Positions 53,670-56,804 of a stretch of 64,000 bases of DNA are shown here, in pieces. The notes beneath the pieces are model-generated. The model was given only the letters and a program-made list of their open reading frames with translations. It had not been told where the DNA came from and searched no databases. Numbering within the stretch: position 1 is the first letter of the stretch; each line of letters starts with the position of its first letter. The stretch spans positions 62,001-126,000 of the IMG/VR virus record IMGVR_UViG_3300036770_004143, one strand, 5' to 3'. A program made the translations under genes and the position numbers.

Positions 53670-54134
53670 TTAAGGTGTGGAAACAATAAAAGGATATTTG
53701 TAATGGAAAATAGTATCACATTTTTTGTTATGTAACTTCACATCTAATACCCCAAATTCAGGAGTTGATGTTTTTATACTAAATAATAAACCTATATTAC
53801 CCCCCACTTTAGTCTTATCCAGGATAGTTATCCTGCTTTTGGATAATGGGTATAACTCATATTTGACAAAGTAATTACTATCTATAACCATATTTGTCAA
53901 ATTAGTAATATTACCTAAACTATCATTATGATAAAATTTAGTAGAAACTACATATGTAGAACTTGATGCAATTGAAAACCAATCTTCATTTATACTAGAA
54001 TATTTTGTTGTAGAATCAATTGATAATTCAACTGCATTTATATTCCTGTTTGATGTAACTTGTTGCAAGGTAAATACTTCATTATCACAAGATAATATCA
54101 AGGATAGAATAAGGAGGGGGATAATAGTTTTCAT
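53670..54134 (-). CDS. Predicted lipoprotein
   Basis: MKTIIPLLILSLILSC signal peptide II with lipobox Cys16, then DNE. Confidence 0.6.
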   Translation of the reverse strand: MKTIIPLLILSLILSCDNEVFTLQQVTSNRNINAVELSIDSTTKYSSINEDWFSIASSSTYVVSTKFYHNDSLGNITNLTNMVIDSNYFVKYELYPLSKSRITILDKTKVGGNIGLLFSIKTSTPEFGVLDVKLHNKKCDTIFHYKYPFIVSTP

Positions 54135-54160
54135 AGTTTTTTAATATAAATATATTATGT

Positions 54161-54592
54161 TTATGAAATGCTTATTGTTTTCTTTCCTGTTTCAACATAA
54201 TTTGGCAAGAATAATGTCAAAATACCATTTGAAACTGTTGCTTCAATATTACCCTCATTTATTTGGTAATTATTCAATTTGAAATTGTGTCTTATTGTTT
54301 TAGTTTCACCCTTCTTGTTAAATACCCTTTTTCCGGTTATCTTTATTTCCTTGTTCTCCAAAACAATTTCCAAATTGTCTTTTGTGTAGCCTGGAACTTC
54401 AAAGGATATATAAGCACCATCCTTGGTTGATTCAATATCATATTCATCATTAAAAATACTACGACTTTGGGTTGATTGTGATGAAATGTTTTGGTCTGAT
54501 GAACTAAAAGGGTTGTAAGTTGAATGTGATGTAAACACAAATGGGCTTGAAGAACCAAATAATAACTCTGCTAAAAAATCTCTCTCTTTCAT
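54161..54592 (-). CDS. Small heat-shock protein (Hsp20/alpha-crystallin)
   Basis: FEVPGYTKDNLEI..ITGKR..IEATVSNGILTLFLP. Confidence 0.88.
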   Translation of the reverse strand: MKERDFLAELLFGSSSPFVFTSHSTYNPFSSSDQNISSQSTQSRSIFNDEYDIESTKDGAYISFEVPGYTKDNLEIVLENKEIKITGKRVFNKKGETKTIRHNFKLNNYQINEGNIEATVSNGILTLFLPNYVETGKKTISIS

Positions 54593-54635
54593 AATTTTGT
54601 TTTTTTTATAAATGTTTATTTTTTTTATGAGAAAG

Positions 54636-54651
54636 TCAAATTTAATACCAA
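54636..54651 (-). promoter_or_regulatory. Sigma54-like -24/-12 element for hsp20
   Basis: Minus strand TTGGTATTAAATTTGA, 44 nt upstream of hsp20 ATG; GG-N10-GA rather than canonical GG-N10-GC. Confidence 0.4.
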
Positions 54652-54663
54652 CTTATTTTCATA

Positions 54664-54738
54664 TGACATTTTGTCAGTTATAAGCATTGTTAGATGACAT
54701 ATTGTCATATGAATCATTATTTTACTGACAATTTGTCA
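54664..54738. promoter_or_regulatory. Three TGACA-N3-TGTCA palindromes at exact 31-bp period
   Basis: 54664-76 TGACAtttTGTCA, 54695-707 TGACAtatTGTCA, 54726-38 TGACAattTGTCA between divergent hsp20 and clpC. Confidence 0.8.
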
Positions 54739-54791
54739 AAACTATTGGATTAGTCCAAAATTTGTATGATATTTATAAAAAAACATAAGAT

Positions 54792-56804
54792 ATGAATGTT
54801 GACTATTTTGATGATGAAAAAACAACAAGAGGCAAGAAAAACACCTCTGGTTCAAAAACTCCAGTATTGGACAATTTTAGTAGGGACTTATCCAAATTGG
54901 CTGAGATGGGAAAATTGGATATGTCAATTGGTAGGGAGAAAGAGGTTAAGAGATTGGCTCAAATCTTATCAAGACGAAAAAAGAACAATCCATTAATCCT
55001 TGGTGATGCTGGGTGTGGTAAAACAAACTTAATTGAAGGTGTTGCATTGATGATTTCAAAAGGTGAGGGTCCACAAAATCTATTAAACAAAAGAATTGTA
55101 AATTTAGATTTAACCTCTGTTGTTGCTGGAACTAAATATAGGGGTCAGTTTGAGGAAAGAATGAAAGTAATTCTTGATGAATTGATTGCAAATCCAAATG
55201 TTGTTGTATTCATTGATGAAATACATACATTAATTGGGTCTGGAAACTCATCTAATGCTATGGATGGTGCAAATATATTCAAGCCAGCATTAGCATCTGG
55301 GGATATTCAATGCATTGGTGCAACCACATTTGATGAATTTAAAAAATCAATAGAGAAAGATGGGGCATTAGCAAGGAGATTTCAAAAAATCAAACTTGAA
55401 CAACCTTCAATAAGTGAAACAATTAAAATTGTTAAACAATCTATTGATAAGTATGAATCCTTCCACAAGGCATCATATAGTGATGAGGTTATTGATTTAT
55501 GTGTCAAGATGGCAGATAGATATATTAATGATAGAGCATTTCCTGATAAGGCTTTTGATGTTATTGATGAAGTTGGGGCAAAACTACAAGTTGAGGTTAA
55601 AATACCTGAATCAATTGTAAAATTAAAAGAAAAGATTAATGACTTAAAACAGGAAAAAACAAGAGTTGTTATAAACCAAGAATATGAATTGGCTGCTGAA
55701 ATTAGGGATAAAGAGTTAAAGTTATTAACAAAACTTGAATCTGAAACAAAAAAGTTTGAAGAGGATAAGTTAAAGAATAAGCGAAAGATAGATATTGAAG
55801 ATGTCTATTCTGTTGTTTCAATTATGACAAATATTCCTTTGGAACAAATGAATATTGATGAAAAGCAAAAACTAATAAATTTAGATAAAAAGATTAAGGA
55901 AAATCTTATTGGTCAAGACGCTGCTGTTGAATCTATTACAAGATCAATTAAAAGAAATAGACTTAACATTAAAGACCCAAATAGACCAGTTGGTAGTTTC
56001 ATATTTTTAGGATCCACAGGAGTTGGTAAAACACATTTAGCAAAACAATTAGCCAAACAATTATTTGGAAATGAGAAATCATTGATTAGGGTTGATATGA
56101 GTGAATACCAGGAAAAACACACCATATCAAGATTGATTGGTTCGCCTCCAGGCTATGTTGGTCATGATGAGGGTGGTCAATTGACTGAAAAAGTTAAGAA
56201 TAACCCATATTCAATTATCTTGTTTGATGAGATTGAAAAAGCCCATAAGGATGTATTTAACTTGTTATTGCAGATATTAGATGAAGGTCATTTAACTGAT
56301 AGTCTAGGTAAAACTGTCAATTTCAAAAACACAATCATCATTTTAACAACAAACTTGGGTATCAAAAAATTCCAAGACTTTGGAACTGGAATTAGTTTCA
56401 CATCATCCAAATATGGCAATGAAGTTGCTAAAAAAGAAATGCTAATGAAAGAATTGAAAAAGTTCTTCTCACCTGAATTCTTGAACCGTATTGATGATAC
56501 CATTGTATTTAACACATTGAATGATGAGAATGTTAAAAAGATAACTGAAATTGAACTTAACAAACTAATTACAAGATTAATAGAATCTAATTACATTGTT
56601 TCCTTTGATTCATCTGTTATTGATTTAATTAGCAAAGTTGGATTTGATGACACTTATGGAGCAAGACCAATCAAGAGAGCAATCCAGGATAAGATTGAGG
56701 ATTTAATATCTGATGAGGTTTTAAATGGTTTCATTAAAGAGAATGAACCTTACCACCTAGTGGTTGAAGATGAAAATGTTATAATTAAAAAGGGGGTCGC
56801 TTGA
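54792..56804 (+). CDS. Class I Clp/Hsp100 ATPase, ClpC-like, lacking the N-domain
   Basis: GDAGCGKT and FIDEIH (D1), UVR-like middle coil (QEYELAAEIRDKE), GSTGVGKT and FDEIEKAH (D2), GISF loop, YGARPIKR. Confidence 0.9.
   Translation: MNVDYFDDEKTTRGKKNTSGSKTPVLDNFSRDLSKLAEMGKLDMSIGREKEVKRLAQILSRRKKNNPLILGDAGCGKTNLIEGVALMISKGEGPQNLLNKRIVNLDLTSVVAGTKYRGQFEERMKVILDELIANPNVVVFIDEIHTLIGSGNSSNAMDGANIFKPALASGDIQCIGATTFDEFKKSIEKDGALARRFQKIKLEQPSISETIKIVKQSIDKYESFHKASYSDEVIDLCVKMADRYINDRAFPDKAFDVIDEVGAKLQVEVKIPESIVKLKEKINDLKQEKTRVVINQEYELAAEIRDKELKLLTKLESETKKFEEDKLKNKRKIDIEDVYSVVSIMTNIPLEQMNIDEKQKLINLDKKIKENLIGQDAAVESITRSIKRNRLNIKDPNRPVGSFIFLGSTGVGKTHLAKQLAKQLFGNEKSLIRVDMSEYQEKHTISRLIGSPPGYVGHDEGGQLTEKVKNNPYSIILFDEIEKAHKDVFNLLLQILDEGHLTDSLGKTVNFKNTIIILTTNLGIKKFQDFGTGISFTSSKYGNEVAKKEMLMKELKKFFSPEFLNRIDDTIVFNTLNDENVKKITEIELNKLITRLIESNYIVSFDSSVIDLISKVGFDDTYGARPIKRAIQDKIEDLISDEVLNGFIKENEPYHLVVEDENVIIKKGVA

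Follow-up and report, generated by a model that had tools for sequence, protein, structure and literature searches.

A virus record of 270,075 bp (IMGVR_UViG_3300036770_004143; linear, 30% G+C, estimated at about 90% complete) was examined through a window of 64,000 nucleotides, corresponding to bases 62001-126000 of the record. Within this window, a gap of 199 bp separates two divergently oriented chaperone genes. The first encodes a small heat-shock protein of 143 amino acids (hsp20; Pfam HSP20, E 7e-9), and the second a ClpC-like, two-ring AAA+ unfoldase of 670 amino acids with matches to Pfam AAA_2, AAA_lid_9, ClpB_D2-small and UVR. The latter is 50-54% identical to the ClpC proteins of Bacteroidia, which are of about 860 amino acids, but lacks their N-terminal Clp_N domain. 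Near-identical DNA was found in freshwater, aquatic, wastewater, runoff and subsurface metagenomes from 12 studies, whilst no isolated phage was close, the best ClpC match among isolate phage records being 53% identical. The features of the intergenic region are listed in the table below.

Table. Features of the hsp20-clpC intergenic region and its flanking genes (window coordinates; promoter positions are relative to the predicted hsp20 start)
Feature	Position	Strand	Sequence	Remarks
hsp20	54161..54592	-		Gene downstream of the sigma-54-type promoter
Sigma-54-type -24/-12 element	54636..54650	-	TGGTAT-N5-TTGA	GG at 54649/54648, GA at 54637/54636; predicted start near 54624, leader of about 32 nt
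Dyad 1	54664..54676		TGACATTTTGTCA	Centred about -46; 11-nt core ends 14 nt from the TGG
Dyad 2	54695..54707		TGACATATTGTCA	Centred about -77
Dyad 3	54726..54738		TGACAATTTGTCA	Centred about -108; its TTTG (54732-54735) sits where a -33 element for clpC would be
Near-palindrome	54745..54758		TTGGAttagTCCAA	May be the -33 of a second sigma-A-like promoter or another factor's site
-7-like box	54757..54764	+	AAAATTTG	21 nt after the TTTG in dyad 3
Recurrent phage promoter-like box	54770..54777	+	TATTTATA	22 nt before the clpC ATG
clpC-like gene	54792..56804	+		670 aa, no N-domain

The initial annotation had described three TGACA-N3-TGTCA palindromes at an exact 31-bp period, a TTGG-N10-GA element pointing at hsp20, a further near-palindrome, a late-type motif before clpC, and the absence of a nearby regulator gene, and each of these elements was confirmed at its position. 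The three dyads, spaced 31 and 31 bp from start to start, are the only exact matches in the 64-kb window, where 0.13 are expected, and none of 100 shuffled sequences reached three. When a single mismatch was allowed the motif was no longer enriched (6 against 3.45), hence the signal is the cluster of three perfect sites. TTGG-N10-GA is the reverse complement of 54636-54651 and reads TTGGTAT-N5-TTGA towards hsp20. This element has GG at -24 and TTG at -14 to -12, with exactly the 10 nt between GG and the -13/-12 dinucleotide that define a sigma-54 promoter, although the base at -12 is A rather than the classical C. Amongst 363 ORFs of the genome, hsp20 was the only one with such an element within 100 nt upstream. 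An E. coli-type sigma-70 scan showed no enrichment (7 against 6.0), and no CIRCE/HrcA operator (TTAGCACTC-N9-GAGTGCTAA) was found in the window with up to 3 mismatches.

The ClpC protein was used to recover 80 related viral loci, most of them only 66-68% identical, from which 66 distinct upstream regions were obtained. Of these, 62 had retained a sigma-54-type element of the form NGG(C/T/A)A(C/T)-N5-TTG(A), with the same spacing, 52-63 nt before the ATG of the divergent gene. A dyad was located 13 nt upstream of this element, or 44 nt upstream (13 + 31) where the proximal copy had decayed, and neighbouring dyads were 30-31 bp apart. Intergenic lengths seemed, without statistical testing, to group near 165-180, 190-205 and 209-217 nt, which would fit an array kept in register with both promoters. 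Among the four closest genomes, the spacers between dyads had diverged whilst the dyads, the sigma-54 element and the boxes on the clpC side had not. The phage Hsp20 proteins were themselves very diverged (about 40-47% identical among relatives). In about half of the relatives, including L051 (2343-2711), L045 (2433-2807) and L037 (2312-2743) of the related phage loci, the divergent gene was not hsp20 but encoded a protein of 123-145 amino acids with two UVR (UvrB/UvrC) motifs, possibly a McsA-like partner of ClpC. The control region is therefore kept independently of the gene it drives.

To determine whether the dyads have a bacterial counterpart, as the initial annotation had suggested testing at Bacteroidota heat-shock promoters, 185,579 genomes (one per prokaryote species) were scanned for two dyads 30-32 bp apart; the test came out positive. 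Most of the hits obtained were in Firmicutes. In many Bacilli and Clostridia (loci L087-L165), the identical pair of 13-mers flanked -35-like boxes beside genes for TetR_C_19 proteins or small XRE proteins of 70-76 amino acids; as no such gene was found in the phage record, these were rejected as unrelated operators and look like convergent use of one operator sequence. At least eight hits were in Bacteroidota, and seven of these eight lay directly upstream of hsp20 genes, in Kordia, two Flavobacteriaceae, a Cryomorphaceae, a Bacteroidales, a Saprospiraceae and one unclassified member of the phylum. Each of these seven had TGG(Y/A)A(Y)-N5-TTG 11-13 nt after the proximal dyad, and the second dyad was 31-32 bp from the first. 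Single dyads with the same geometry preceded dnaK and a probable grpE.

Unbiased samples were then drawn from the GTDB class that holds Kordia (Bacteroidia). The strict composite (dyad, 9-15 nt, TGGNA-N6-TTG) occurred seven times in 6 of 61 genomes, and never when the pattern was reversed; it preceded dnaK twice, grpE, hsp20, a LemA-like gene, thioredoxin and one unknown gene. Only about 10% of sampled genomes thus carry the strict TGACA/TGTCA composite, with most using variants at position 2 of the half-site, and across lineages the dyad generalises to G-N-CA-N3-TG-N-C. Of 30 hsp20 promoters, 23 had the sigma-54 element (0.3 in shuffles) and 17 had a dyad (0.5 in shuffles). At those 23 promoters the -12 tetramer was TTGA in 16, and the commonest -24 hexamer was TGGTAT (8 of 23), so that the phage promoter has the commonest host form and its GA at -12 is the local norm rather than a deviation. 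Of 29 grpE promoters, 28 had a dyad and 12 had the strict composite, whilst 19 of 30 groES promoters had a dyad, placed farther upstream and with ATGA or CTGA at -12. Reversed controls gave none for grpE and groES, and 0-2 over the whole set. Hosts carry one to three dyads, with the proximal copy 12-14 nt upstream of the sigma-54-type promoters of hsp20, grpE and dnaK. By contrast, only 3 of 28 host clpC genes had a dyad, hence host clpC was rejected as a model for the phage clpC side, and the link to phage clpC has no host precedent.

The sigma-54 dependence of this regulon has been published. Sigma-54 promoters were mapped by transcription start sites at groES-EL, lon, dnaK, grpE-dnaJ, htpG and clpB of Flavobacterium psychrophilum, with three candidate activators left unassigned (PMC9723704), and a 2025 survey predicted the same for Bacteroidota and Planctomycetota (PMC12316311). 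In the library searched, we found no paper that describes the dyad, its binding protein or its use by a phage.

Profile searches of the whole phage record revealed no Sigma54_DBD, HTH_3, TetR_N or HTH_8, and Sigma54_activat matched only the second ClpC ring. Host factors must therefore act, although the record is about 90% complete and a phage regulator could lie in the missing part or belong to an unknown family. Sigma54_DBD was found in the Bacteroides control genome, and the five host genomes examined share two AAA+ groups. One is a conserved protein of 387 amino acids (loci L261, L262, L265 and L269) with a receiver domain and an AAA+ domain that matches Sigma54_activat strongly; as it lacks both the GAFTGA loop and any DNA-binding domain, it was rejected as the DNA-bound activator. 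The other begins with an AAA+ domain (GAFTGA at residue 88), continues with a linker of about 120 amino acids and ends in HTH_8, and reaches no NCBIfam equivalog cut-off, including that of PspF.

This second, PspF-like protein was present full-length in 41 of 41 sampled genomes, including one of 0.5 Mb. Its gene followed miaB on the same strand in 22 of 30 loci, and in about half of the 41 genomes groES lay 2-4 kb from it on the same contig and strand. A conserved neighbourhood in Bacteroidia (host loci L276-L305 and L306-L322) runs miaB, the activator, one or two genes, then groES-groEL. Of 17 miaB promoters, 14 carried a single dyad, and 12 of these had a TAnnTTTG-type box 11-21 nt downstream, placing the dyad over the -33 region; the reversed control gave none. 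This is the signature of a regulator that represses its own operon. It makes this protein the best candidate for the binder, an inference that we consider more likely than not, but one that rests on an autoregulation signature and gene neighbourhood only.

The clpC side of the region is organised differently. A sigma-54 promoter for clpC was rejected, because the spacing is GG-N14-TG. The core TATTTATA gave 47 occurrences in the genome and preceded 40-odd of the 363 ORFs, mostly 22-28 nt before the start codon, with no conserved upstream partner, whilst related 8-mers such as ATATTTAT occurred within 100 nt upstream of up to 62 ORFs and in none of 234 coding controls. This box, TATTTATA (extended to ATATTTATAA), is the reverse complement of the T4 late box TATAAATA and represents a phage-specific promoter class, though the analysis does not show that it is late. 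Another enriched upstream word, AAACCTGGAT(TT), was found before 16-22 genes across the genome and never in the coding controls. Also before clpC, the TTTG within dyad 3 and the -7-like box form a sigma-A-like pair (Bacteroidota consensus -33 TTTG and -7 TAnnTTTG, 19-21 nt apart), although the first base of the -7 box is A rather than T and the TATTTATA box follows 5 nt later. The geometry is that of the host miaB promoters. In 58 relatives the stretch from dyad 3 to the last box was conserved position by position, with dyad 3 the best conserved of the dyads and at a fixed distance from the clpC promoter elements, the -7-like box conserved as aAaaTTTG, and the TTGG half of the near-palindrome conserved in at least 80%, its other half less so. 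Dyad 3 therefore probably matters to clpC as well, be it as a repressing, activating or neutral site.

In four metatranscriptome runs from three studies, assembled contigs covered hsp20 (record 2 of run X15 spans 54117-54606, that is this gene alone) and clpC (record 12 of run X17 begins at 54787), but none covered 54626-54739. This fits two divergent transcripts that start at the predicted promoters, and argues against carried-over DNA, although contigs cannot show transcript ends. One further contig (run X15, record 1) was permuted, joining 54132 back to 53790 inside the unannotated 154-aa gene at 53670-54134, which may be an assembly artefact, a tandem variant or a circular molecule.

The phage genome contains exactly two dyad-plus-sigma-54 composites. 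The second lies outside the window, at genome position 185988-186026 (1502-1540 of locus L004), where GACATCTTGTC is located 13 nt from a perfect TGGCAC-N5-TTGC. No ORF of 50 amino acids or more follows for about 500 nt, and Rfam and tRNA scans found nothing downstream, so the product may be a non-coding RNA or a long leader. It is situated in an ORF-poor region of about 1 kb (185457-186441; L004:971-1955) that holds several 17-bp palindromes of the type CCCCCTTAATTAAGGGGG and other G/C-run repeats, has no Rfam family and no tRNA, and could be an origin or a regulatory hub. Across the viral contig collection the composite was found in at least 120 contigs, against about ten expected by chance on a rough estimate. 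Of the first downstream ORFs in 52 of these, 34 encoded HSP20, 6 HSP70, 4 UVR-motif proteins, 2 Cpn10, 1 Cpn60 and 1 a sigma-70-family protein. Some of these contigs may be host fragments, but many are 100-370 kb.

Taken together, we interpret the intergenic region, with good confidence, as a host-mimicking control region, in which the sigma-54-type promoter facing hsp20 is of the type that Bacteroidia use for their own hsp20, grpE and dnaK genes and the three dyads are sites, each for one dimer, for the host activator of that regulon. In this view, host RpoN-polymerase would sit closed on the promoter until up to three activator dimers, bound on one face of the helix, assemble into the hexameric ATPase; the long linker would let the AAA+ domains form a ring that reaches the closed complex without DNA looping, and stress-dependent release of the activator would then fire hsp20, so that the phage chaperone is probably switched on when the infected cell signals protein stress. 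The sequence architecture, its conservation, its host counterpart and the absence of sigma-54, an activator and three regulator families from the phage record are demonstrated here, whereas RpoN dependence, the identity of the binder and its binding, ring assembly, the direction of the effects and the inducing signal are inferred from sequence alone. The proximal site is only about 20 bp from the -24 element, at a fixed distance in hosts and phages (groES sites lie farther away), which is unlike classical position-independent enhancers, so the binder could be something other than an activator. More speculatively, since dyad 3 overlaps the -33 of the sigma-A-like clpC promoter as in the apparently self-repressed miaB-activator operon, the activator may damp early clpC transcription while phage-directed transcription from the TATTTATA promoter takes over.

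The interpretation given in the initial annotation, that the phage plugs its chaperone pair into a host heat or protein-stress regulon whose factor and site may be uncharacterised, is thus partly supported. It is right for hsp20, but control of the pair is indicated for this one gene only, and the regulon is not wholly uncharacterised. The activator and its sites are not assigned in the papers searched, and it was the phage array of three perfect, phased sites that made the motif visible and led to a testable site and a testable protein in a phylum whose sensing of heat and protein stress is still unsettled. If the model holds, chaperone genes carried by large phages are not merely captured cargo, but are kept under a host stress circuit that needs host sigma-54 and a host ATPase, across more than a hundred viral contigs; sigma-54 control of phage genes has, to our knowledge, rarely been described. 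The composite may also serve as a sequence marker that points to Bacteroidota hosts for uncultured phages, and as a compact stress-inducible promoter cassette for Bacteroidota genetics. A broader reading, about as likely as not, is that the single miaB-linked, PspF-like activator is the master heat-shock regulator of Bacteroidota, working from a fixed site about 20 bp upstream of the -24 element rather than by looping, and that many phages of this phylum have wired their own chaperone genes (hsp20, dnaK, groES, a UVR-motif ClpC partner) to it, using the host's protein-stress sensor as a cue for infection-induced stress.

Of the alternatives, the best surviving, though unlikely, is that the dyads are operators of a host or phage repressor that holds the sigma-54 promoter silent, with activation coming from solution, for example from an activator without a DNA-binding domain. 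The rigid 12-14 nt between the proximal dyad and the TGG is more typical of operators than of enhancers, the dyad over the -33 at miaB is in a repressor-like position, and hosts do encode the receiver-domain AAA+ protein that lacks an HTH. However, that protein also lacks the GAFTGA loop needed to contact sigma-54, the only universal activator with GAFTGA has its own HTH_8, arrays of two or three sites in helical phase fit the assembly of an activator ring, and activators such as NtrC and PspF also repress sigma-70-type promoters that overlap their sites. It is less likely still that a phage-encoded dimeric regulator of an unrecognised family binds the dyads as a lambda-like switch between hsp20 and clpC, the resemblance to host sites then being mimicry for competition, or coincidence. 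Three phased dyads between divergent genes do recall tripartite phage operators, the Firmicutes TetR and XRE repressors show that unrelated proteins can read this sequence, and most of the 363 phage ORFs have no known function. Yet, in addition to the absence of the three regulator families from the record, the genome holds only two other core (GACA-N3-TGTC) matches, both in one non-coding region, of which the exact one sits next to a perfect sigma-54 promoter, and a third core match inside a short ORF; moreover, the geometry relative to the -24 element is that of host promoters, and the composite recurs before chaperone genes in viral contigs of different kinds. Passive inheritance of a host promoter with a captured hsp20, a common host-derived gene in phages, or a chance cluster is very unlikely, given that sites and spacing are kept whilst the spacers and Hsp20 proteins diverge, that the same promoter drives a UVR-motif gene in about half of the relatives, and that chance is excluded by the shuffled sequences.

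Several known systems share parts of this arrangement. The TetR (TetR_C_19) and small XRE operators of Firmicutes have the identical pair of 13-mers, but sit beside their own regulator genes and flank sigma-A -35 boxes. Tripartite phage operators such as lambda OR likewise place three dyads between divergent genes; here, no repressor gene is adjacent or was detected in the record, and the motif belongs to a host regulon and is tied to a sigma-54 promoter. In RheA-hsp18 of Streptomyces albus a small heat-shock gene is under a dedicated dyad with TGTCA/TGACA half-sites, though the repeat has the opposite orientation and a different spacer and belongs to a repressor, whilst ibpB of E. coli is sigma-54-dependent but lies in a different phylum with no shared dyad. 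NorR, with three sites, and NtrC at glnA require several dimer sites to build one hexamer, and NtrC sites also repress an overlapping sigma-70 promoter, much as dyad 3 may act at clpC and the dyad at miaB; the half-sites and signals differ, however, and those sites act at a distance. As with PspF and the psp operon of Escherichia coli, also a stress response, the candidate activator has no N-terminal sensor domain, is probably controlled in trans, would bind upstream dyads and appears to repress its own sigma-70-type promoter, but PspF sites lie about 80-126 bp upstream and use IHF-assisted looping, and the candidate has a linker of about 120 amino acids. The closest systems are the sigma-54 (motif SM4) promoters of the protein-quality-control genes of F. 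psychrophilum (Guerin et al. 2021, PMC9723704) and the predicted sigma-54 chaperone cluster of Bacteroidota (PMC12316311), which have a -24/-12 promoter in front of chaperone genes, the kind to which the host promoters collected here belong and whose commonest hsp20 form the phage promoter matches. Those are chromosomal genes for which the papers assign no activator and, as far as text searches of them show, describe no upstream dyad. The sigma-54 chaperone regulon is thus already known, whilst its upstream site, its probable activator and its use by phages appear to be new, with the promoter here lying in a phage and accompanied by three phased sites.
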